A DNA stretch of 64,000 nt, taken from Utricularia gibba (lineage: Eukaryota; Plantae; Magnoliophyta). The stretch's first letter is position 1. Each line of letters opens with the position of its first letter. Below, one piece after another: positions 19,884-48,576 of this stretch. The position numbers were made by a program, and so were the translations under genes. Location: assembly GCA_002189035.1 (NCBI GenBank), contig NEEC01000015.1:744001-808000 (forward strand), read 5' to 3'. The notes below the pieces were generated by a model, which saw only the letters and a list, made by a program, of their open reading frames with translations, made no database searches and was not told the origin of the DNA.

Positions 19884-20168
19884 ATGCCCGAATACAAGTG
19901 GGTGAATATGGATGTCTTCAGCTGCCCTATCTGCCGAAGTGGCCCAATGAGGGCTCCTATCTTTACGGTAGTATTCTTTTTTTTTTTTTTTTTTGAAAAA
20001 TTCTTATTAAAAAACATGGATACTCATGCCCAGTGCAGCGAAGGCCACGTCGTCTGCAACGTGTGCGCATCAAAACTACATCGAAGACCACATCAAATCC
20101 AATTTCGGGTCAGGCTGGCCCATGCCACCTCCCGGATGCCACGTCAGATGAAACGAATGTTCAGTTAA
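19884..20168 (+). CDS. SINA-type RING micro-gene with truncated RING (72 aa; exons 19884-19967, 20034-20168)
   Basis: MPEYKWVNMDVFSCPICRSGPMRAPIFT|CSEGHVVCNVCASKL; the last CxxC pair is absent. Family TATA module at 19844-19850. Confidence 0.65.
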   Translation: MPEYKWVNMDVFSCPICRSGPMRAPIFTVVFFFFFFFEKFLLKNMDTHAQCSEGHVVCNVCASKLHRRPHQIQFRVRLAHATSRMPRQMKRMFS

Positions 20169-26802: not shown

Positions 26803-27513
26803 GGTGGTATCAGAGCCAATCTTTCTCTTCTTCATCTCTTATTTATCTTGTTTTTGTTTCGTTCTTAGAAAGAAAAAAAAAACCAGAAACTAGTCCAGAT
26901 CTATATTGATTTGGTTATCTTGTCTTTTGCTCATCTCTTCTTCTGAAAAGAAGAACCAAGGGGGGTTTCTTATCTTTGTTTCTTCCATCCTTTTCTTCTG
27001 GATTGCTGCAAAAAAAAAAAAAAACGTGTTGAAGGGAGAAAGAAAGTTAGTAGCTGAATTTTCAACTTTTCACACATAAGAAAAGTCAAAAAAAGAAGTT
27101 AGTCATTTGAATCCATTGAATCTTCTCTTTACCAAAAAAAAAGAAAAGTCAATATTGTACAACTTTGTCTATTGTCCTACTTCTATTTCATTTTAACTCT
27201 TTTCAATTGTCTACCTACCTCTTTTGGTGTTAATCACAAAAAGTTACACTCTATCTTTCCATTCCTACTCTTACTTAACCATTATTACTATTACCATCAC
27301 CAAGTCTTATATTGTTCGCTTTCTTTATCCCATTCATTACTCTAGCCACCCTTATCTCTTTAAACCACACTTAGATGGATTTTTTAAGGTTTATTGAGTC
27401 TTAAAGTTCAAGAGGACTTGAGGTTTGGAAATTCTTTCTTTCTTCATTTACTTCTATCTTTCTGTCGTTGTACTCTTTCCTTCTTTTTGTCTACACTTTT
27501 CTCTTGTAGTAGG

Positions 27514-30500
27514 ATGTCGAGCTCTAATAACCCTGCAGAAGAATCAAATGTTATGGATGTTCGTTTCGTACTTAATGCAATGCAAAGTGAGTTCAGGAGA
27601 TTACAAAGATGCATGGAACAAATCCACGTCAAACTAGAGTACCATGATGAATCTCTCAAGAACATCAAAAAGCAAGAAGAGGACAGTGTCTTCCATGGAA
27701 GAACAAGAGTTCCAACACACCATAGCAGAAGGAATTCTCAACAAGAAAAAGATTTGGAATCTGAGGCTGAAGAGGCAAAGCATGGTGAACAAAGGAGAAA
27801 CAATGACAACATCCCTGATGAGTATGATTCATCTAGTGGTGATGATACAGAACGAAGATCTCAAAGAAATTGGAGGCCAAATCGTGGTGTGAGATATGAT
27901 GAAAGACCCAGGGGTAGACACACACGTGAATACAAGGAATTTGATAACATCAAGATGAAAATCCCTTCTTTTCAAGGGAAAAACGATCCAAATGCCTACT
28001 TGGAATGGGAGACTCGTGTGGAGCATGTGTTTGATTGTCACAACTATTCTGCAGTCAAGAAGATCAAGCTTGCTGTTGTTGAGTTTACAGATTATGCCAT
28101 AACTTGGTGGGATAAAGTAGTACTCAACAGAAGACGAAATGATGAAGAACCAATTCGCACTTGGGCTGAAATGAAGAGGATCATGAGAAAAAGGTTCATT
28201 CCCAGCCATTACCAAAGAGATCAACACCAAAACTTGCAGAAGCTCACCCAAGGGAGCAAAACCGTGGAAGAATATTGGAAAAAAATGGAGGTGTTAATGA
28301 TTCGAGCCAATATAATAGAGGATAGGGAAGCTACAATAGCAAGATTCCTCTATGGTTTAAACAAGAAAATCTCTCAAGTGGTCCAGTTGCAACACTATGT
28401 GGAGATTGAAGACATGTTGCATGTTGCAATAAAGATTGAGAAGCAACTAAAGTCTAAGGGACAACATAGAGACCATCCAAAACCTTCTACCTCGTGGAAT
28501 GTTGCTGGAAGTAAGGAGAAGAAACCAAATTATCTTTCATTTGGGAAATCAACCAAGTTTGGACCGATGAAAGAGGGCACTTCAGATACTCGAAACCAGG
28601 AAAGAGTATTTAAGTCTTCTGGACCAACACGAAATATCAAGTGTTTCAAATGTCTTGGCCATGGTCATATTGCTTCGGAATGCCCAAACAAGAGGACCAT
28701 GATTCTAAGGGACTCTGGAGACGTTGAATCTGATGTTGAGTGTGAAAGTAGAAGTGAAGTACAGGAGATAGATGATGGGGAACAACAACCTGTCATTGGT
28801 GAAAGTTTGGTAACAAGAAGGACTTTAGCCATGGATGCTAAGCCAATGGAGGAGGAACGAGAAAACTTATTCCATACACGTTGCTTTGTGAATGGGAAAG
28901 TTTGTAGCCTAATAATCGATGGAGGCAGTTGCGCAAGCGTTGCTAGTGTTCTCATGGTGGATAAACTTCATCTTCCTACTCTTAAACATCCAAATCCCTA
29001 CAGGCTTCAATGGTTGAACGAAGGGAGCGAAATAAAGATCACTAAACAAGTTCTTGTTGCTTTTCAAATTGGAAAGTATCAGGATGAGGTTCTTTGTGAT
29101 GTAGTGCCCATGCATGCTGGACACATACTCTTGGGAAGGCCGTGGCAATACGATAGGAAGGTGATCCATGATGGCTATACTAACAAGTATTCCTTTTCTA
29201 TGAAAGGAAAACAAATCACATTGGTGCCTTTATCTCCAAAAGAGGCACACGAGGATCAAGTTAAGATTGCTACTGCTATCAAATCCTTTGGTGATTCGAG
29301 GAATGAGAGCTTGGGAGAGAAAAAAGAGATATCACGAGAAAGAAAAAGAACACCTAAAAAAGAGAGTGAAAAGAAAGACGTGAATGAAGGAGTTGTGAGG
29401 AAAAAAGAAGTGGAATGCCTTGTTGCAAGAATGAGTGATGTGAAAAGAGTGTTACATGCCAGAAATCCCTTTCTTTTGCTCTTGTTTAAAGAGACTTTGT
29501 CACACAACTCTAACTCACAAGAGGATCTTCCTACTTGCATTAAACTTGTTTTGCAGGAATTCAATGATGTTTTTCCTGAAGAATTGTCTGGATTACCACC
29601 ATACCGAGGAATAGAACATCAAATTGATTTCGTTCCTGGTGCTCAAATCCCAAACTGAGCTGCATATAGAGCTAACCCTGAAGAAACCAAAGAAATCCAA
29701 CGCCAAGTAGAGGAACTCATGGCTAAGGGGTTGGTGAGGGAAAGTGTGAGTCCATGCTCAGTTCCATTATTATTGGTGCCAAAACATGATGTAACATGGA
29801 GAATGTGCACTGATTGTCGAGCCATCAACCAAATAACGGTTAAGTACAGTCATCCTATACCTAGACTTGATGATATGTTAGATGAATTACATGGATCATG
29901 CATTTTCTCTAAGATCGATTTGCGTAGTGGATATCATCAAATTAGGATGAGAAAGGGGGATGAATGGAAATCTGCTTTCAAAACTAAGTTTGGTTTATAT
30001 GAATGGTTGGTTATGTCTTTTGGATTGACTAACGCACCTAGTACTTTTATGAGGTTAATGAATCATGTATTGCGTCCCTTTCTTGGTAGATTTGTTGTTG
30101 TTTACTTTGATGATATTCTTGTGTATAGTAAGACACTGGATGAACATACATGTCATTTACGTGAGGTGTTGTTCGTCTTGAGAAAAGAGTGTTTATATGC
30201 TAATATCAAAAAATGCGACTTTTGCACAAACAAAATCTCTTTTCTTGGCTATATTGTAAGTGATTTAGGAATTTTAGTAGATGAAGACAAGGTGAAAGCA
30301 ATTAGAGAATGGCCAACCCCTACCACAGTTGGAGAAGTGCGCAGTTTCCATGGATTGGCTAGCTTCTACCGTCGTTTTGTCAAGGATTTCAGCACAATTG
30401 CTGCACCATTGAACGAGGTTGTGAAGAAAAATGTTCAATTTTGGTGGGGAGAATCACAAGAACATGCTTTCAAGACACGTAAGGATAAGCTTAGCTCAGC

Positions 30501-32370
30501 TACTTTACTTACATTATCTGATTTCTCTAACACGTTTGAAATTGAATGTGATGCTTTTGGAGTTGGAATAGGTGCTGTTCTCATGCAAGGAGGTCGACCT
30601 ATTGCCTATTTCAGTGAAAAGTTGGGTGGAGCTACACTCAATTACCCAACTTATGATAAAGAGTTGTATTCATTGATAAGAGCACTTGAAACTTGGAAAC
30701 ACTATCTTTGGCACAAAGAGTTTGTTATCCATACAGACCATGAAAGTTTGAAGCATGTCAAGAGTCAAAAAAATCTCAATAGAAGACATGCAAGATGGGT
30801 GGAGTTCATTGATACCTTTCCTTATGTTATCAAATACAAGAAAGGTAAGGAGAACATTGTTGCAGATGCATTGTCACGAAGGTACATACTTTTAGCTACT
30901 CTTGATGCTCAAATTCTTGGATTGTCAACGATAAAAGAATTTTACAGTCTTGATCATGATTTTAAAGATATTTATCTTTCATGTGAACATAAACCTCTTG
31001 AAAACTTTCATAGGCAAGATGATTTTCTTTTCAAAAAGAACAGATTATGTATTCCTGAATGTTCAATTCGTGAGTTTTTAGTGAAAAAAGCTCATGGTGG
31101 TGGTCTAATGGGGCATTTTGGGGTCACCAAGACGTTGGACATGCTTCAACAACACTTCTATTGGCCACACATGAGAAAAGATGTAGAAAAAATATGTGGA
31201 AGATGTTTGGTGTGCAAGAAAGCCAAATCAAAATCAACTTCTCAAGGATTGTACACTCCTCTTCCTACTCCTCTTTATCCTTGGATTGACCTTTCTATGG
31301 ATTTTGTTTTAGGATTACTGAGGACTCAAAAGGGAAAGGATTCAATATTTGTAGTCGTGGACCGGTTCTCCAAGATGGCACATTTCATTGCTTGTCACAA
31401 GACTGATGATGCTTCGCATGTTGCTGATTTATTCTTCAGGGAGATTGTTAGGCTTCATGGTATGCCACTTACCATTGTAAGTGATCGTGACACGAAGTTT
31501 CTTAGCCACTTTTGGCGTACACTTTGTAGTAAGTTGGGAACAAAGCTTCTTTTCTCTACCACTTGTCATCCTCAAACTGATGTACAAACCGAGGTAACAA
31601 ACCGAACCCTAGCTACCCTACTTCGTGCCGTCATCAAAAATAACATTAGAACATGGGAAGATTGCTTACCTCATGTTGAGTTTGCATACAATAGAGCAGT
31701 ACACTCTTCTACTCATTGTTCTCCTTTTGAAATTGTGTATGGTTTTAATCCTCGTGCTCCTATAGATTTGTTGCCCTTGCCATCTGATGAATTTTGTAGG
31801 TTTGATGGTGCTAAGAGAGCAGAAGCCATCAGAACACTACATGAGAAGGTTCGAAATCAATTGGAAGCCAAAAACAAGGAGTATGCAGCTAAAGCAAATA
31901 AACATAGGAAGAAAGTTACTCTACAACCAGGAGATTGGGTTTGGGTACATTTTCGAAAGGAAAGATTTCCAAGCAAGAGACATTCAAAGCTTTTGCCCAG
32001 AGGAGATGGACCCTTTCAAGTCATTGAGAAAATCAATGATAATACATATAAGATTGATCTTCCAGGTGAGTTTTCGGTGCATTCCACGTTCAATATTGCT
32101 GACTTGGTTTCTTGTGATGTAGATAGTGACGATTCAAGGATGAATCTGCTAAAAGAAGGGGGGGATGATGAGATCATGGATGCTACTGATTATTCCAATG
32201 AAGACAAAGGACACAAGATCAATAATTTTCCATTGATTTCAGTTGGGCCAATCACTAGATCAAGAGCAAGAATAAATCAAGAAGTGCTTAAGACCTTATG
32301 GGCCAATCACCCAAGCTATGAGGTGTTTGGGATGGAATTCAACATTATCAAAGTGGATCAACTTGATTAG
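27514..32370 (+). CDS. gag-pol polyprotein interrupted by one in-frame stop (29656-29658)
   Basis: Gag [18 protein letters not shown], zinc knuckle [14 protein letters not shown], protease [21 protein letters not shown], RNase H and integrase with HHCC and core motifs. The two ORFs are in the same frame across PN*AAYR. Confidence 0.92.
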
Positions 32371-32574
32371 AGAAGGCCTATTACGACCAAATACATTATT
32401 ATGACTACTTTGCCTCCAATAAGGCCCAATCCTTCAACTATATAAGAAGGGTCTTACTCTTGTTTTGGACAACTTTAATTGTAATCACTTTTGAGAACAA
32501 ATTCTCCTTCCTTGAGTTCTTGTACAACTTAGACTTATCAAGCCTTGCTTGTGGTGTCTAGTGTATGGTTTATC
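32166..32574 (+). repeat. 3' LTR, lacking the distal 162 bp
   Basis: The match to the 5' LTR stops abruptly after ggtttatc (5' LTR position 26640). Confidence 0.9.
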
Positions 32575-32760
32575 TTACACCATTTTGTGATACAAGGTTT
32601 AATTTCATCACCCTAGCTTCTTATATGGTGTTAGAAGAGCAAAATCTATATTATGAAAAGTTTTAACTAGGGACATTACAAAACTCATAACGTTGTGCTA
32701 ATAATTCTAGAAAAAATTGTAATACGTACTTTACAATTTCACTTAAATAATTCTAGACAA
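32575..32760 (-). promoter_or_regulatory. Orphan SINA-cassette promoter plus ATG (32583) pointing into the 3' LTR
   Basis: The reverse complement matches 25460-25647 (atagattttgctc..aaca.c.atataagaagctagggtgatg..aattaaaccttgtatca..atgg). The reading is ATG GTG TAA at the junction. Confidence 0.75.
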
Positions 32761-35546: not shown

Positions 35547-35701
35547 CTTGTATGATTACTATATGTATTTTATCTGACCGCGTAAGTTAAACACAATAAT
35601 TTTCAATTTCTTTTTCTTTCATCAATTAGTATTATAAAATTATAATAATTTCCATGTAATAATTATTAATCTTGTTTTTGTTTATTAGGACGGCCCCGAG
35701 G

Positions 35702-36879: not shown

Positions 36880-37700
36880 TTTAAACCGACCTAATCAGTA
36901 AAATTAATGTTTATGATTATTTATATACTACCTTTTCTGATATTGTTCCTTTTGTATTATAAAAATATTTTTTTGATATTTTTACAGTCAAATATTCTCT
37001 GGATTTTCAATTGAATGCAAAAGATGATTCATTTACCTAACTTTGAGAATAGTATTTTAGAAAGAAGAATTCATCTACTTATTTAAGATATTCGTTTCAT
37101 AATATAATGCATGTCAATCTATCAAATGTCCTTGCGGATCATCCTCTTTCAAGGGTTGGCATCATCTTCTTTCAATTAGCTGAATTTCTGGTGGAGATTA
37201 ACGGTTATTATGCAAGAATGTGCCATTATTGTGCATTTTATTATGATAATTTCTTGATTCAACTAAATGACTCTAATAACATGATAAAATGCAAACAGTA
37301 ATTAATCTAATAAATAGGTTATTCAAATCGGGCGGGCCCGGGAGAAGGGGCATGGAGCGGGGTTTTTTTTAAAAAAAATATCCACTATGTTTTGATTATA
37401 TTAGAAATTTAACTATTCTACGTGTATTTTTTTGTGCTTAATGTATGAAAGAAATGAACAGTGAGTATTTTTTAAAAACACCCATGGAGCGGGTCATCCC
37501 AGTCAACCCCTTCCCAGGAAGACTTTTCTCATATTCCTCCTCCTCCATCAGATTAATTTTTGCATAATTAATTACTCAATTAGTATAAAAAATGATCACA
37601 CAAATATTAACCTTACCGCCTAAGTTAAAACATAATTTTCAATTTCTTTTTCTTTCTTCAATTAGTATTTTAAAATTATAAGAATTTCCATAATCCCTCA
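36880..37700. repeat. Cassette copy F, a paralog of 34770-35680 with the hairpin core lost
   Basis: Shares gtcaaatattctct, attttagaaagaa.aattcatctacttatttaaga, ggagcgggtcatcc..gtcaacc and taagttaaa..ataattttcaatttctttttctttc with the E unit. Confidence 0.7.
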
Positions 37701-37894
37701 CACAATCCAATCAAAAATGATACTTTATACCATCCTATTTGTTGCCCATTCTACCCTCCATGAAAACCCTATTGCATCATATCTGAATGGGTATCATTCT
37801 CATCCGGTTTATACGGATTTATGTTATGATAATTAACTAATTTTATTTACCACTGAAAATTAAATTCTCAGGTATATTATTTTACAAATACGAC

Positions 37895-38278
37895 TTAATC
37901 ATTCTTTTGTTTGTCGGTGTCGGGGACTGGGGGAGGAGCCGGATCTCCATCTCCATCTCCCTCGAGAATAGACCGAAATATCTTTTCCAGGTCTGAACAC
38001 CTGCAACAGATTGGTCCCTTACAGATTGGGCATTCCGCCAATTTGTGGAAGCATGGCTCACACACAATAATCTCTCCTTCTCCGCACTGCATTCAATTTA
38101 TTTTTTTTCTTAAAAATAAATATTGGTAATTAAAACAACAAATAAAATAAAACCAAAAAAAGGTTACCGAGAAGATGGGCCCTCTGATGGGGCCGACACC
38201 GCACGCCGAGCAATTAAAGAGGTGGGCAGGGACATAACATAGCTTCTTTTTCTCCATCTTGTTCATACGAGTTTTCAT
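37895..38278 (-). CDS. SINA-type RING micro-gene, intact ORF (up to 100 aa; exons 38278-38168, 38086-37895), His ligand replaced
   Basis: ..LFNCSACGVGPIRGPIFS|CGEGEIIVCEPCFHKLAECPICKGPICCRCSDLEKIF..; GT-AG intron of 81 bp; family TATA module at ~38294-38300. Confidence 0.7.
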
Positions 38279-39702: not shown

Positions 39703-40376
39703 ATGCCGTCTTCTCTGCAGATTCAGAGGATTAGCTCCAGGAGCCCTCGCTTCACGGACCGCCTGGATCTCATGTGGGTTTCTCCGATTTCCCCTGAAAT
39801 TCCCCTGCCGGATGATGTTCGCCGCCGTCACACTCACCTGGTACTGTCTGATTTCGTTTTGATTGATTTCCGCCTCATACGGGTAACCCTTTCTTAATCA
39901 TGTGCCGTTTCTAGGTAATGGAAAACCAGTGCTGCTCCGCGGTGGTGCAGGCGATCGATGCCCCTATCGAGATCGTGTGGTCCTTGGTGCGACGATTCGA
40001 CAACCCACAAGCGTACAAGCATTTTCTCAAAAGTTGCCGAGTGGTTCACGGCGGCGGGGAGGTGGGTACTGTAAGGGAGGTGACGGTCGTCTCCGGGTTG
40101 CCGGCGGGGAGGAGCACGGAGAAGCTGGAGATTCTGGATGATGAGAAGCATGTGATGAGTTTCAGAGTCGTCGGCGGCGATCACCGTCTCCGGAACTACC
40201 GGTCCATCACGACACTCCATGCGGCGGGAGCGGCCGCGACGGTGGTGGTGGAGTCGTATGAGGTGGATGTGCCGGAAGGGAATACGGTAGAGGAGACTCG
40301 TGCCTTTGCGGATACGATCGTGAGATGCAATTTGCAGTCGCTTGCTCAGATCTCTAGAAGTTTGCTCACAAATTGA
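39703..40376 (+). CDS. PYL6: ABA receptor of the PYL4/5/6 clade, 199 aa (exons 39703-39840, 39915-40376)
   Basis: [10 protein letters not shown]...[11 protein letters not shown]|[12 protein letters not shown], gate SGLPA, latch HRL and CNLQSLA. The PYL6 label comes from remembered synteny; the clade assignment is firmer than the ortholog call. Confidence 0.9.
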
Positions 40377-41289
40377 ATTTTCAATATATATATATTTTTT
40401 TGCCAGGCTGTTTAATCCTCATTATCGCATTAAATAGCCGCTTAATACTTCAAAAACAAAAAAAACTAAAAGCATTTTCCTTTCTAATTAAAGGCATTAT
40501 GTTAATAAAAAAAATTTTATTATCTAAATTCTTTCTTCAAAATGAGAAGTATTTTTGTTGAGGAGGCAAATGCCCAACAGTCATCATAAAGCCTTCCATC
40601 AAAATGGACCAGGTCGCAAATTAGGGTAAAGCCCAGTTCGAACAAGTACGAATATTTATACGTTTTTTATATTATATATAAAATAACCATTATCAGATCA
40701 AAATGGGCTGGGCCACCGATGAAAAAGAGTGATCAGCGTGGCCCAATACGCAAATTTTCAATTTCTGTTTTTTCGGTAAATTATTATTATAATTTGATAT
40801 CAATTTGGATCGATTCCGGCAACAATACAATGAAAAAAGCATTAGTGCAACTTGTTTTAGTATGATTTTCTTGGTTAAATTCATGAATTTTTTTATAATG
40901 AATTAAAAAAATATAAATCTTATATTTAATTAATTTTTTTATAATGAAATACAATTTGCTTCTCAACAATAAAAATGAAATAATGTTTGAGAAGAAACTT
41001 GTAGTAATGAGTTTCTGGTTTTCTTTAAAAAAAAAACTAAAATATTAATTATAATAATTCAAAAATAAAGAATAAATTGTGGTTTTTATTTATTTTGTAG
41101 GCAACCCTTGTGCTGGGCACAGAAAACACAACCTACCATCAATGTTTTTTAAAGCAACTATGTAAATGGGGCCGTGAGAATCAAAAAATGCACCAAGTAT
41201 TAACTATTGCCAATACCTAGCTGCCACTAACACGTACGTACGGGTAAAACACAGGTTCGGGTCGGGTCGGCCGACATCTCAGGTTCCGC

Positions 41290-41664
41290 CGCCGTGCGTT
41301 CTCGCAGGAGTGAGCAACCAGTCATGAGAATAAGCTCTAGAACAAGGCGTCACCTTAAAAAAAAACATCGCTACCATAAATCTCATCAGGCAAAGATATA
41401 TCAGGAGGATATTCTTTCTTCTTGCGTATTGCCATCTCTTTTCCTAGTTCCTCCTCCAATTCGAAATCTCCGGCGACCCCGTTCAACAGCATCTCCAACT
41501 TTCTCCTGCTCAACGATTGAGAAGACCAAGGAGCCATCAAATCTCCAGCTCTTTTCCCCTTCGAATACAAAACATCATCATTACCGACGATGACCATGAA
41601 CCGCCGCCGTCGACGCAGTGAAGGGGGGTGGCGCCGCCGGAGCCGGAAGCTCTGTTGACATCAA
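41290..41664 (-). pseudogene. Deleted and frameshifted fragment of the neighbouring TZF gene
   Basis: Collinear with 46370-46822 (cagtcatgagaataagctctagaacaaggc; gagccatcaaatctccagctcttttcccctt; gccggaagctct.ttgacatcaa), with several internal deletions. Confidence 0.88.
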
Positions 41665-42461
41665 TAATATATATTAATTATTATTTATTTGTCATGTGTG
41701 GTTACAAATTCTGACTCAAAGTAGGTTGAAAATTCAAATGTGTATTCATGACTACATATTATTATTATTTTTTACTTGTAGTCTATGAATTTGGAGACAG
41801 CAAAGTGGAAGCGATGTAACGTTCATTATAATTGATTCGATATTCGAAAACGTAAAAAAAAATTAATATAATGATATGTATATTATTAGAATTAAATAAA
41901 AAAATTCATATTAGATTCAGGAAAAGAAATATATTATTTAATAGATAATATCACGCTTAGAAGCATTTTAAAGGAGACCAAAAGTGGAGACCATTATGGA
42001 TTAAGAAGATTTGTAACATCATAATTATTTATTGCATGTATTTTCCATGCAAAAGAATCGATTTTATTGAAATTTGGATAATAATATTGTGGTGAGAAGG
42101 ATTCATCCCCTTATTTAAGTGACTTAGCGCAAGGCATTATGGGAATTAAGAATGCACTAGAATACCATCCAGTTTGTGTCTTCTTGGGATTATTCTCAAT
42201 TCTTCTTAACACCATCCTCCTTCCAAAGGCAGGCAAGTAGATGGAGGTTCATGACGGATGATCAATTTTCTAAATGACGCTATATCATTCTCACTCAATT
42301 TTACAAAGTAGTACTATTCATTCATTCATTTTTTCTTTATTGATAAAAATATTAATTTTTTGTTGGTTTGGTGTTATTTGAAAAGCATAGGTTGGGTGTA
42401 GAAGCAATATTTGGTTCTTGTATATATTATCAAGTACACACAAATATTTGTACAATTTTTA

Positions 42462-42813
42462 CTAATCTTGTTTCTCTTTGTGGGCAGCTGGAGGACGAGA
42501 CCGCGACGTCGCCTTGGGTTCGAAGCGCGTCGTTTGGAAAAGCGCTTCGAAATGCCTGCATCTACAGCAGACGTCCTCTCCGCAGAAGGGGCATCTCCCT
42601 AACTTCTGCGAACACGGCCCACACAGAATGTGGCCGTTCATGCACTGCCAAAAAAAAAAAAAAATTAAGAACACATACACTTGATTTAATAGAAACACAG
42701 CAAAACAAACCCAAAAAACTTACGGAAAAGATGGCCCCTCTGATGGGGCCGTCACAGCAGATCGGGCAGTTGTACATCTTCATGTCAGCCTCGATTAATT
42801 TGTATTCAGCCAT
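42462..42813 (-). CDS. SINA-type RING micro-gene, intact 90 aa (exons 42813-42724, 42644-42462)
   Basis: MAEYKLIEADMKMYNCPICCDGPIRGAIFS|CMNGHILCGPCSQKLGRCPFCGEDVCCRCRHFE..KQD*; complete C3HC4 with the SINA CxNGH signature. Confidence 0.75.
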
Positions 42814-42930
42814 TTACTCTCTGGTACAGTGTTAAATTTCATCAATTACTTCATTTAATATTATTATACTTTAAATTGTTTCAAGTATGAAGAATTAGGC
42901 TACATGAAAATTAACGTGATTTGGAGGGAA

Positions 42931-42950
42931 TATGTATGTATGTATGTATA

Positions 42951-42986
<36 letters not shown>

Positions 42987-43004
42987 TGTATGTATGTATG
43001 TATG
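42931..43004. repeat. (TATG)n/(TA)n microsatellite in the palindrome spacer
   Basis: Direct reading of the sequence. Confidence 0.95.
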
Positions 43005-43317
43005 TACATGCACTTCTACACCCATCACATCACCTCATTCATGATCCTCGAATAATCAAATCGCAAATTGCATGTTACATATTTTTCTTGAATTATTATC
43101 AGAATTTTGAAATTTCCAGAAAATTGATTTTGCAAATATTTCTAAGTCATTATCAATTTTTCTAGAATTATTATAATCTCAGGTGAATTTTGTAATATGT
43201 GTAATTAAAGTGCAATGTTGTTAAAAAGCACGACTTTTTCATACTATAGATCTTACTTCTACAACTCTATATAATAAACAAGCTGGTGATGAAATTTAAC
43301 ACTGTACCAGAGAGTAA

Positions 43318-43669
43318 ATGGCTGAATACAAATTAATCGAGGCTGACATGAAGATGTACAACTGCCCGATCTGCTGTGACGGCCCCATCAGAGGGGCCAT
43401 CTTTTCCGTAAGTTTTTTGGGTTTGTTTTGCTGTGTTTCTATTAAATCAAGTGTATGTGTTCTTAATTTTTTTTTTTTTTTGGCAGTGCATGAACGGCCA
43501 CATTCTGTGTGGGCCGTGTTCGCAGAAGTTAGGGAGATGCCCCTTCTGCGGAGAGGACGTCTGCTGTAGATGCAGGCATTTCGAAGCGCTTTTCCAAACG
43601 ACGCGCTTCGAACCCAAGGCGACGTCGCGGTCTCGTCCTCCAGCTGCCCACAAAGAGAAGCAAGATTAA
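43318..43669 (+). CDS. SINA-type RING micro-gene, intact 90 aa (exons 43318-43407, 43487-43669)
   Basis: Protein identical to the 42813-42462 copy; GT-AG intron of 79 bp; family TATA at 43268-43274. Confidence 0.8.
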
Positions 43670-45413
43670 ATATTGTATAATTATACAAAATAATTTATTA
43701 TACTTTATTGTAAAGAAGGTGAATTAGCGATGGTGTTAAGAATTAAGGAGCCCCAGCCCATCACAATTTTCAATTTCTGTTTTATCGGGAAATTAATATT
43801 ATAAATTGATATCAATTAAATCAATCCAACGAAAACCAGAAAGATGAATAACACAATCCACTCAATCCTGGCCCTCCATTACCGCGAGATGTTTCCCTCA
43901 ATGAAAATCCTAGTGCAACTATACCTACTTCATGTGAGTCCAAGGCCTCGACGAGTGTTTTAAAATAATGGGTTTTTTTTTATGAATTCAATTTAACAAT
44001 TTTTATATAAATCGAAAAATTATTTAAAAAAATTAAAAATATTACATTTAATTAATCTTATAATTTGCTTCACCACAATTATTTCGTCTTGTTATGAAAA
44101 TATGAAATATGAATAAAAGGAAATAGTTGGCGAAAAGAAAATTGTTCTAATCAGATTCTGTGAGCAATATTTTAAAAACGTGTTCAATTCATGATTTGAA
44201 TTAGTGATCCCTACGGTTAAATTGGATTCCTTAATTTTTTATTATATACAATAAAAATAATTGTTTAGACAAACCGTTATTTTAAAATATGGACGGCTGT
44301 AGTCGTTAACTTTCTAGTCATAGAATGGTAGTGGATCATTGATACGAACCCAATTTCACGTTCGGCCCGATCCACCTAAAGAAGGCCCACCGTAAAATCC
44401 ATAGAGCCGTTGGATGACGTAATTATGGGATGAGCCCTTCCTTTGCATAAACCCCGTCTGCCACTTGAATACGGATTGATGTACGTGCATAGTCGATACT
44501 TGTGATTAGAACACGCAAAAACAAATTCAAAAATTTTGGTGAACTGAAAATCCCAAGGAAAATTGAGAATACTCAGATATGCCAAATAAATTGATCTAAT
44601 TAAAAATGAATGAACAAATGTAACAAACATCAATATAACAATATTATTCATTTTAGATATTTAATTTTCATTGTTTTATATTTGGTATTTTCAATTTTCA
44701 TCCTCAAATTACTCTAGATTAAATATATTTAATTTTGAAATTCCTATCAATAACTTTTCACCATACTCAGAAAATAGATCTCTGCATAGTCATTTTATTC
44801 AATTTTATCATTTCTCATACATGAATTCACTTAGACCATCCTTTCTCGTGCAGGGCATCGGATTCGAAGCATGAATGATTGAGGCCTAGTTCGATATTTC
44901 TATAAATAAGTTTAAACAATGTAGAACCAAAATTAGTTTTTTTATTAAATAATAAATCTCACATTCTAATAAATCATGGAGAGGAGGAAGCTTCCAACTG
45001 CCAATTCATGGGATAACCCTAATAATGTACACGTGTTTAGTATTAGGATGGCAGGCTGGACCCCACCTAAGTAAACATGTCGACACATTAGATGACATTA
45101 AAATCTAATTAAAAAGTGAGAATTAATTAGTATTTAAGTGTAATTATTATAGATGAGAAGATAATAGTGAGAAAATAAGGAATATGAATAAATGGAATAA
45201 TTTTTTAAAAGAAGATTTTAGTAATCGAATTTATATCGTGGCTGCTTTCTAAAAACAATAATTCAATGAGAAAAAATAAATCAGCTTGGAGGTGGCGCGG
45301 CCGGTTAGTTCCCGGGATGACGGCGGAGGCCATGATGATCTGCTTACGCGGCTGCTTCCGCCGCTCTATTTACATTTCTCGACGTGCCACCATGTTATCA
45401 AGGGGGGTCTCCT

Positions 45414-47126
45414 TCACCAGTAGACTTCTGGGTCATCCATGTTCGGAGTCAGCATTGTGTTTCTGGCGTGAAATCCATTCTCGCTACGGATTCCGAAAGA
45501 TGGAGATTTCTTGAGCTTAGTCGCATCGTCGCCATTGAATCGCCAGTCCAGCTTCCCATCCGGAGATCCCCACTCGGATGGAATTGAGTGCACGGGGGAA
45601 TTGGCTGAGCATGAGAGGGAATAGCGGCCGGGATCGATGAAGCTCTGACTTCGTTTGGACAGAGCTGAAGATCTTGAATTCAAGATGGCGGCCGCCATTG
45701 CTGAGGAAGAGTCGAAAGCATAGTTTCTTGGTTGTGCAGATGAGATGCTTGAGGGAAAGCTCGATCGGAGGTGGTTCATGTTCTGCCGGTATGCTGGAGA
45801 TTGCACCTGAGGGGACGAGTTGGAGCTGAATTTTGGAGATAATCCCTGCATCTGTGAGATCAGAGACTGGTCATACGAACCAAAAAGTTCATCAAGATTG
45901 CCTTGCTTCAGCTCTCCCCCAGCTCCCATTCTGCTGTATGGAGAAGAGATGTTCCCCATTTCCTCGAATCCCAGAACTTTCATATCTAAATCCGCATCCC
46001 TTGCACTCAGGGTCGCCTTCAATCGGCTCCCCGGAAGCTGCAGAGCCGGAGGAGTGGTATTGATCTTGCTCTGCCAGAGCGAACCCCCTACGATCGGAGA
46101 CGAACCTGGTGAACCAAGAGGCAGTTGACTCAAATCCAAACCAGTAGAGGCGTACGACTGCCGGAGCTCTTCGGGCTTGTGAGCGAAGAAGCAAACTTTC
46201 CTCGAGCAACCAGTTTCATCCTTACAGAGACGTGTTCTGTATTGAGCGGGATGAAGCCATGATTCGAAAACACCATGAGCATATTCACAGTTGTCTCCTT
46301 TCACGCAAGTTCCCTTCTTGAATTCAGGACAAGGAACACAACTATAATGATACTTCCTCAGATCCCGGCGCCGTGCGTTCTCGCCGGGGTGAACAAACGG
46401 ACACTCCGTCCAGTCATGAGAATAAGCTCTAGAACAAGGCTTCACCTTAAAACTGTACATTCTGAACTCATCAGTGCCATAAATCCCATCGTTTATATCA
46501 GGCAAGGATATGTCAAAAGGATATTCTTTCTTCTTCTGTATTGCTATTTCTTCTTCTGCTTCCTCCTCCTCGTCCAATTCGCAATCGCCGGCGACCCCAT
46601 TCAACAGCATCTCCAACTTTTTCCTGCTCAACAATTGAGAAGACCTTTTCACACAAGGAGCCATCAAATCTCCAGCTCTTTTCCCCTTCAAATCCAAAGC
46701 GTCAACATCACCCGCGGCGTTGATCAGAATATTAACGACCTCCAAGGATGACCACGAACCGCCTGCGGCGGCGCAATGAAGGGCGGTGGCGCCGTCGGAG
46801 CCGGAAGCTCTATTGACATCAACTTTGCCTGATTCAACTAAATATTTGAGAATCGATAAGCTCCCATATAAAGACGCAACCATGAGAGGGGTTCTTTCTT
46901 CAAACCCCATCCTGTTTGAACCTAACCTTCTACAGTACCAAAATCCCATTTCATCTAAAGAAGAACCCATCTCGATTTCATGGAGAAACCCTGACAGATC
47001 ATCAAACGCAGCTAATTCAAGCAAAACAGTGCAATATTTCCGAGCTTCTCCCCCTTGTTCAACTTGAAATTCAGCCTCCATCTCCGAATTATAACCGTTG
47101 CTTTCACTCTTCCCACCTCCACACAT
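45414..47126 (-). CDS. CZF1: Ankyrin-repeat tandem CCCH zinc-finger protein (CZF1/SZF-type TZF), intronless
   Basis: [57 protein letters not shown] and [26 protein letters not shown] likely 1-bp loss at the stop would extend it to [15 protein letters not shown]. Confidence 0.93.
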
Positions 47127-48576
47127 GAGAATCTGGAACGGAAACAAGGAATCGAAAACTAATCACCGCCATATCTACAGCAAAACAAAAAAATCGAAAA
47201 TTTCCATACAAAAGAAAATCCCAGTTGCCCAAAAAGGTCTACAGGATCAAAAATAAAAACCCAGATCACAAAAACAAGAATTGACGACAAGTCGCCGAGA
47301 AACAAACAGGGAAAACAAAACCCACCTCAACTACCAACCAAACAACTACGCACAAAAAAACGGAATCTGAGAAACCAAAAGCTTCGCCCTTCTCACCTCT
47401 CACCAACGAAGACTAAAAGCTCTGAATCTACCACGAAAAAAGCTTTGAACAGAGAATAAATGCCCCGATGTTCACACCTTCACAGTGCAGCCCAAGTTTG
47501 AGAAAAAAAAAAAGCGAAGACTTTAGAGGTACGCGTGAGAGGGGAAGGGCGACTTTTCCTCTCCATTTCTTTATTTTAATGCCGGTTTCCTCCTTTTTTT
47601 TTAAATAATATTTTTAATACCTTTCTATCCTAGAAAATTTTGAAAAGTCTTTCCTTCCTAGGAGTAAAATTTTATTTTATTTCATATGGCCCTTTGGATA
47701 TTAATAAAAATTCAAAAACACTTCCTTTTCCATTCCACAAAGTACACGAGTTCCATTAATCCTTATCATTAATTACTAAATAAGATACTTTCTATAAAAA
47801 TCTTGCACAAGATTCGGATAAACTTTTTGCATGTATTGTTGATTCTGACGTCAGCATCATGTTTCTGTCCAAACTTGGCAAAGGGATAAGAATTGAACAA
47901 TGGACCGACCATGTAGAGTTTGTAATTTTGGCTGTCGTGGCATTTTATTTCGTATTTTGAGAAGCAATAAATAAAGAAAATGATTTATTTAATTAAATTA
48001 AACACCTCCCAAAATGGGGTATAAATGATTATAGATAAGATTTTCTAAAAATGAAATATTGGTTAAATGTAGTTATTAGAAAATGAAGTGCGTCGAAAAT
48101 TACTAGACAAACACCATTTGGGTTTGACAACTTTAGTCAAAAATGGACGGCGAGGGAGACCACGAAATGGACGGCTGCAGATCGGGTCACTTTTGCTTAA
48201 CGGATTCCATCGCACGCATGCATCTTCCATCATAATAAAATTATTATCATCATGACCCCTCATCTCCCCCGACTTTTACTTTTCCTCCACACACGTTTTT
48301 AAATTTTATAATATAATTTACGTTACTTATTATTAGTAATTAAAAAATGATAAAAATGGAAGACATGGTGATTCGAAGAATGAATGATCAATAATTAGGT
48401 TGTAATAAGTTTTAAGTTTATATTAAAATTGTATAACTAATTCCATAGGATTTGAATGAGAATGATTGTAATTTTAAAATAATAATAGAAATGGCTTTTA
48501 ATTTTTTTAAATATAAACAATTTTTGTAAATTCCGGGTTCTAGAATGTACGCTCATCTCTTTGGTTAACAAGGAGG

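Follow-up and report, generated by a model that had tools for sequence, protein, structure and literature searches.

A putative RING-only SINA-derived mini-gene, mirrored in a near-perfect inverted repeat, within a mostly pseudogenised array of Utricularia gibba

SINA/SIAH E3 ligases, among them the plant SINAT and SINA-like proteins, are characterized by a C3HC4 RING with a C-x-[NSE]-G-H signature, a SINA-type spacing of the zinc ligands and a post-RING helix, followed by two SIAH-type zinc fingers and a TRAF-like domain; their dimer interface lies in the substrate-binding domain. Plant microProteins, such as LITTLE ZIPPER and the B-box-only miP1a/b, are small single-domain proteins that come from a larger multi-domain family. 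RBX1 and APC11 are RING-only proteins of ~85-120 residues, which recruit an E2 and are provided with substrates via partner proteins. Natural truncated members of the SINA family have also been described: in Arabidopsis, the RING-less SINAT5 (Col-0) and SINAT6 were reported to compete with full-length SINATs (PMC10734943). Surveys of plant SINA genes, such as that of wheat, centre on the SINA domain and on RING-less truncated members, and RING-only derivatives like the one described below are not found in the wheat survey (PMC10734943). Our literature search found no specific report of RING-only SINA proteins or of RING microProteins.

The locus described here lies in a stretch of 64,000 nucleotides of Utricularia gibba DNA (hereafter, the window). 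It is the mirror image of SINAT5 and SINAT6, which are likewise natural truncated members of the SINA family but keep the substrate-binding domain and have no RING; competition for substrate could not be used by a RING-only protein. The initial annotation had placed a two-exon, 90-codon ORF with GT-AG splicing at 42462-43669. The gene model, read directly from the letters, bore out this structure, but the span was found to contain two inverted copies of the gene and not a single one:

43318-43669, + strand: right mini-gene copy, comprising exon 1, intron, exon 2 and stop (90 residues)
43318-43407, + strand: exon 1 of the right copy (30 codons; ATG at 43318)
43408-43486, + strand: intron of the right copy (79 nt, phase 0, GTAAGT...T15GGCAG)
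43487-43666, + strand: exon 2 of the right copy (60 codons; stop TAA at 43667-43669)
42462-42813, - strand: left mini-gene copy, a mirror of the right copy with the same 90 residues
42813-42724, - strand: exon 1 of the left copy, with its intron at 42723-42645
42644-42465, - strand: exon 2 of the left copy (stop TAG at 42464-42462)

The ATG of the right copy is immediately preceded by an in-frame TAA. From the N- to the C-terminus, the 90 residues consist of a 15-residue leader, a SINA-type RING (C16-C51), a post-RING helix (~58-71) and a Pro/basic tail, with the intron splitting the RING between ligands 2 and 3. Antisense ORFs of 155 residues at 42368-42835 (+ strand) and 130 residues at 43296-43688 (- strand), which cross both exons and the intron of each copy, were also considered as the true gene. 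They were rejected, as they had no family match and no ORF of at least 110 residues was present at the paralog near 38 kb.

All eight zinc ligands of a C3HC4 RING with SINA spacing and a C-x-x-G-H signature were present in the focal gene, and the translation gave the same ligand spacing as initially described, C16-x2-C19-x11-C31-x3-H35-x2-C38-x2-C41-x6-C48-x2-C51. The motif CCRC had been misplaced directly before the stop: it corresponds to residues 56-59, and 31 further residues precede the stop. Within the RING, Ile18 (C-P-I-C) and Pro49 (C-P-F-C) are retained. The residue after the last Cys is Gly52, at a position that is occupied by Arg or Lys in several other copies of the local array and, in SIAH1, presumably by the Arg 'linchpin' just past the last Cys.

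Protein searches were made exon by exon, each exon serving as a separate query. Exon 2 alone matched the Pfam family Sina_RING (PF21362) over model positions 15-35 of 35, with an E-value of 4.6e-5 and a score of 23.9 bits, which is to be read against a curated cut-off of 29.3 bits that was set for the whole domain. The second-best Pfam family for exon 2 had an E-value of 1.3, and exon 1 alone had no Pfam match. Judging by these scores, Sina_RING is the sole credible Pfam family for exon 2. A PDB sequence search gave weak RING matches only, with SIAH1 at an E-value of 3.2.

Alignments of exon 2 to SINA-type proteins reached 16-20 residues beyond the last Cys (exon 2 residues 37-45), with 43% identity across 40 residues of exon 2 in one pairwise alignment (P0009). 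The same type of alignment detected a linker helix after the RING of the focal protein (R-x-R/L-x-x-E-x-[VL]). When exon 2 was aligned to a protein that continues into SIAH-type zinc fingers, the alignment stopped exactly at the start of the first finger. The linker is followed by a tail of ~19-20 residues (E72-D90) and the stop, and the ORF thereby ends ~20 residues past the point where the first zinc finger of a SINA/SIAH protein would start. Overall, the mini-gene has the RING, signature, spacing and post-RING helix of the SINA/SIAH ligases, but differs from them in its Gly, instead of Arg, past the last Cys and in having neither zinc fingers nor a TRAF-like domain.

The focal gene is one member of a local array. 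With a DNA profile derived from four units, 19 matches were obtained, all within 18970-43818. The array and several of its members were as follows:

18970-43818: mini-gene array (nhmmer profile, 19 matches; ~17 copies and fragments)
18970-19162/19601-20304 and 22451-22656/22668-22853: head-to-head pairs or hairpins
24028-24157/24152-24278 and 35666-35791/35821-35927: head-to-head pairs or hairpins
25346-26074/26079-26232: tail-to-tail pair
37895-38257, - strand: paralog P38, with two exons, a 93-codon open frame and a TATA promoter of its own
19884-20168, + strand: paralog P19, with the same intron position and a RING cut after the sixth ligand (C7 and C8 lost)

Many units were arranged in head-to-head pairs or tight hairpins, with arm identities of 74-89%, and three promoter-only stumps were observed. 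The array was mostly pseudogenised, and its copies were damaged in differing ways. The copy P25 has a stop codon within exon 1. The RING of P38 is degenerate, with CGEGEIIVC in place of CMNGHILC, the His ligand gone and one residue inserted; P38 is no longer a match to Sina_RING and has 21 of 36 RING residues in common with the focal gene. A regular-expression scan of the window found a complete second RING half in the two focal copies only. The initial annotation, which had spoken of intact paralogs, was thus overstated, since no other copy in the window has a complete RING (P38 is without the His and P19 without the last two Cys). Likewise, what had been taken for the rapid diversification of these paralogs is mostly pseudogene decay, with one distinct complete RING among ~17 copies and fragments.

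A Ty3-type retroelement, whose two long open gag-pol frames have 754 and 883 residues, was found inside the array, at 27394-32370. It adjoins a promoter-only stump (32564-32740), in which the sequence switches directly 3' of the ATG, as if the element had inserted where one mini-gene copy begins.

The description of the focal RING as SINA-type, with neither zinc fingers nor a TRAF-like domain, held up in both Pfam scans and translation. No SIAH-type zinc finger was found in the ORF, and a tblastn search of the window with the zinc-finger segment of SINA found nothing. Between either copy and the next gene, there was no suitably sized ORF and no Pfam match for the Sina (TRAF-like) domain. From the right copy to the CCCH gene (45414-47147, opposite strand), stop-free segments on the same strand did not exceed 69 residues. 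From the left copy to the PYL4-like gene, the longest stop-free segment on the strand of the left copy (101 residues) corresponded to a fragment of the CCCH gene. In Pfam scans of ten stop-free segments 3' of the two copies, with the longest of either side among them, neither Sina nor a zinc finger nor any other credible family was matched. It had been proposed to look for downstream exons that could add the missing domains; no SINA-like exon was found 3' of either copy.

The short C-terminal end of the ORF, PP..K(E/D)KQ-stop, is common to diverged copies of the array, as is the intron position. For example, P38 ends in ...PAPPPVPDTDKQKND-stop, and a fragment near 18.9 kb reads PPAPHKDQQE. Because diverged copies have this same short ORF end, the RING-only form is ancestral to the array and the family, and not an accident of the duplication boundary.

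Relatives outside the window were sought in protein collections that did not hold this genome's own proteins (the PYL4-like ORF of the window was at most 80% identical to any entry, the best named ones being from asterids). A word search of these collections with exon 2 found no candidate of 33-105 residues. HMMER with exon 2, against 1.84 billion representatives, gave 10 matches at E <= 0.001, among which there was no short plant relative; all 10 were multi-RING or unrelated repeat proteins. Four proteins (P0002, P0006, P0007 and P0008; L001-L003) were built from Sina_RING-plus-linker units, two or three per protein, and had no Sina domain; P0007 was traced to marine metagenomes. These marine Sina_RING-only repeat proteins, together with P0009, resemble the mini-gene in combining a Sina_RING and a linker helix with the lack of a Sina domain, but have either two to three RING units or an extended N-terminal region. 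They are independent cases and not orthologs of the mini-gene, and show that RING-only SINA modules have also arisen elsewhere.

The two focal copies lie head to head in an inverted repeat with the following parts:

42463-42844: left arm (382 nt), starting 31 nt 5' of the ATG and ending with base 2 of the stop codon
43287-43668: right arm (382 nt), of the same extent, a mirror of the left arm
42845-43286: spacer (442 nt, non-palindromic), with a (TATG)n/(TA)n microsatellite at ~42930-43007

Direct comparison showed that the arms were identical at 381 of 382 positions. The single mismatch, at 43660 (G versus A), is synonymous (AAG/AAA), and just beyond the arms the stop codons differ, with TAA in the right copy and TAG in the left copy. 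Local alignments of the flanks, both inside and outside the arms, were no better than those of shuffled sequences. A TATA-like stretch upstream of the left copy, which appeared similar by eye, was not significant. A difference of 1 in 382 nt implies either a very recent event or ongoing arm-to-arm conversion. The best explanation would be that an inverted copy of the transcribed body, from leader to stop, arose very recently, or that arm-to-arm gene conversion holds the two identical; this forms part of an overall reading on which our belief and our doubt are about equal.

A near-perfect inverted repeat of 382 bp is a classic trigger of silencing in plants, which counts against a functional reading of the locus. 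The CpG observed/expected ratio was 0.96 in the arm versus 0.39 in the adjacent Ty3 element, and long-term methylation of the arms is unlikely, given that their CpG is not depleted.

The window also contains a KUP-type transporter, the Ty3 retroelement noted above, a PYL4-like ABA receptor, a CCCH-ankyrin gene and a receptor kinase. The CCCH-ankyrin gene (45414-47147, - strand) has a 74%-identical fragment to the left of the palindrome (41278-41664 versus 46357-46822), which means that the region around the mini-gene underwent an older segmental duplication. A 53-nt block at 43765-43817, ~100 nt 3' of the stop of the right copy, was 92% identical to 40753-40805, 3 kb away, with weaker copies at 35598-35650 and 37634-37717. 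It holds a 14-nt palindrome, AATTGATATCAATT, and was better kept than the adjoining duplicated CCCH fragment. The PYL4-like ORF (39918-40376) encodes 152 residues versus mostly ~200-225 in its homologs, and its N-terminal portion appears to be either absent or in a different frame.

Upstream of the right copy, we identified a conserved promoter block:

43149-43286, + strand: promoter block, with TATATAA at 43268-43274, 44-50 nt 5' of the ATG

Its identity to the blocks that precede the copies at 38 kb, 19.8 kb and 25.6 kb was 68-75%. Over the same units, identity was 60-65% in exon 1, 50-63% in the RING part of exon 2 and 57-63% in the intron, and fell to 39-47% in the 3' flank, which is the background level. 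Equivalent blocks were observed near 38.3, 19.7, 25.5, 32.6 and 34.1-34.3 kb, and the promoter block contains the sub-repeats GAATTTTGTAATATG, AATTAAAGTG and TCTAGAATTATTAT. Within the focal pair, the block was present 5' of the right copy only; at the corresponding place, the left copy has an AT-rich stretch that did not align. The left copy is possibly silent; alternatively, the 442-nt spacer that both copies share may drive it.

To describe the substitution pattern, we compared the focal gene with P38. The proportion of differing synonymous sites, pS, was 0.77 (43 of 55.7 sites), versus a pN of 0.37 (79 of 211.3 nonsynonymous sites; Fisher p 1.5e-7). At degenerate codons for identical residues, the two genes used the same codon in 13 of 30 cases, which indicates that synonymous sites are saturated. 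With dS saturated, omega is not reliable and the contrast between pN and pS is given instead, along with a simulation; the alignment of the tail is weak. When the focal gene was evolved neutrally in silico to 0.2 substitutions per site, the ATG, splice sites and open frame survived in 3% of runs; at 0.3 substitutions per site, they did so in 1%. All eight ligands survived as well in at most 0.2% of runs, a small fraction even when ~17 copies are allowed for. Neutral dN/dS, which the initial annotation had named as evidence against functional proteins, was thus not what we observed, as both the lower pN relative to pS and the simulation depart from neutrality. Since pS is saturated and pN is not, and since the simulation seldom keeps the ORF and its ligands, the RING-only form is concluded to be old and to have been selected. 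On these results, together with the conserved promoter block, the lineage that led to the focal gene is judged to have been under purifying selection on the protein and kept as a coding, regulated gene in the past.

A 58-nt stretch (43372-43429 versus 38203-38144) was 83% identical between the focal gene and P38, despite saturation of synonymous sites elsewhere. It spans the codons for GPIRG.IFS and continues into the intron, and may represent a signal for splicing or, alternatively, a short tract of conversion.

The reading that we favour, with moderate confidence, is that the locus holds a real RING-only SINA-derived mini-gene, long selected, which is the last intact member of a dying array, was recently mirrored, and probably encodes a minimal RING for E2 docking, dependent on a partner or in competition for E2. 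Based on general knowledge of RING domains, the focal protein would be a stand-alone RING that docks an E2 via the usual RING surface, for which it retains Ile18 and Pro49. It would more likely be a weak E3 that depends on a partner, or a competitor for E2, than an autonomous ligase, because Gly lies at the linchpin site and there is no substrate-binding or dimerisation domain. RBX1 and APC11, although also RING-only, are RING-H2 variants with another zinc spacing, are universally conserved as single-copy genes, and have no sequence relationship to the mini-gene.

The proposal that the protein could act as a microProtein agrees with its being a single-domain protein of 90 residues from a multi-domain family, but the pairing domain of the parent is absent and the label fits loosely. 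Classical microProteins keep the pairing domain of their parent, whereas the mini-gene keeps the catalytic, E2-docking RING, and the dimer interface of its parent is missing. As this interface is located in the missing substrate-binding domain, a RING fragment could not poison its parent in the classical manner.

Three observations would count against a working gene: the array is overwhelmingly pseudogenised, its only other open copy is without one zinc ligand, and no short relative was found elsewhere. In addition, a search for RNA runs over the 1.6-kb stretch listed none, at most a weak hint that expression is low or absent in the tissues sampled. The main rival, which is possible but in our view rather doubtful, is that of a non-functional relic: the array decays neutrally, the focal copy is either the final one to decay or recently fell to silencing, and the inverted duplicate is a neutral by-product of an error-prone, palindrome-forming locus. 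Such a history would leave one distinct complete RING among ~17 copies and fragments, a left copy without the conserved promoter block, and no relatives to be found elsewhere by word and HMMER searches, as was observed; moreover, the older hairpin pairs, with their arm identities of 74-89%, indicate that palindromes form here and then decay. Neutral drift at the observed divergence, however, almost never retains the frame, the splice sites and the eight ligands, even with ~17 tries, and would not account for nonsynonymous sites that are far better kept than synonymous ones, a conserved promoter, or CpG that is not depleted. These counter-arguments concern the past and not the present state of the locus: the evidence for selection speaks of the past, and says nothing certain about the state of the gene today.

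A stronger version of the functional reading, which we consider unlikely, is that the mini-gene encodes a lineage-specific regulator of ubiquitylation, which titrates or redirects E2s or forms the catalytic half of a two-part E3, and that conversion within the palindrome protects the last functional member of the family. Such protection would resemble that of sex-chromosome palindromes, in which ampliconic genes are held identical by arm-to-arm conversion.

We regard it as very unlikely that the product of the locus is instead an RNA, that is, a read-through hairpin of ~380 bp that is diced to siRNAs silencing the array family or SINA-like genes, as a young hairpin-RNA locus or proto-MIRNA. 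The whole unit does fold as an uninterrupted stem of ~380 bp (-877 kcal/mol), a graded series of shorter hairpins is present in the array, and plant MIRNA genes can originate by inverted duplication of their targets. However, the head-to-head promoters transcribe apart, so that the predicted hairpin would require read-through from outside. Rfam had no match anywhere in the window, the CpG content bears no sign of long-term RNA-directed methylation, and the coding frame was kept by selection. Finally, it is scarcely credible that assembly created the second arm as an artefact, for instance through long reads that folded back as chimeras on one real copy: the 381/382 identity is unusually high, but a simple fold-back would be mirror-perfect, whereas here the arms differ by one base, the stops are TAA and TAG, the flanks are unrelated, the 442-nt spacer is non-palindromic, and older natural pairs of like layout exist in the array.

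The locus illustrates, within a short span, how a small gene family can arise, be mirrored into palindromes and disappear. Should the protein be made, it would serve as a natural test of how a SINA RING behaves when the half that binds substrates is absent, whether as a weak E3, an E2 sink or a partner-dependent catalytic module. If the locus is silent, it would represent a gene family that is dying in the ordinary way, with a young palindrome as its conspicuous feature.
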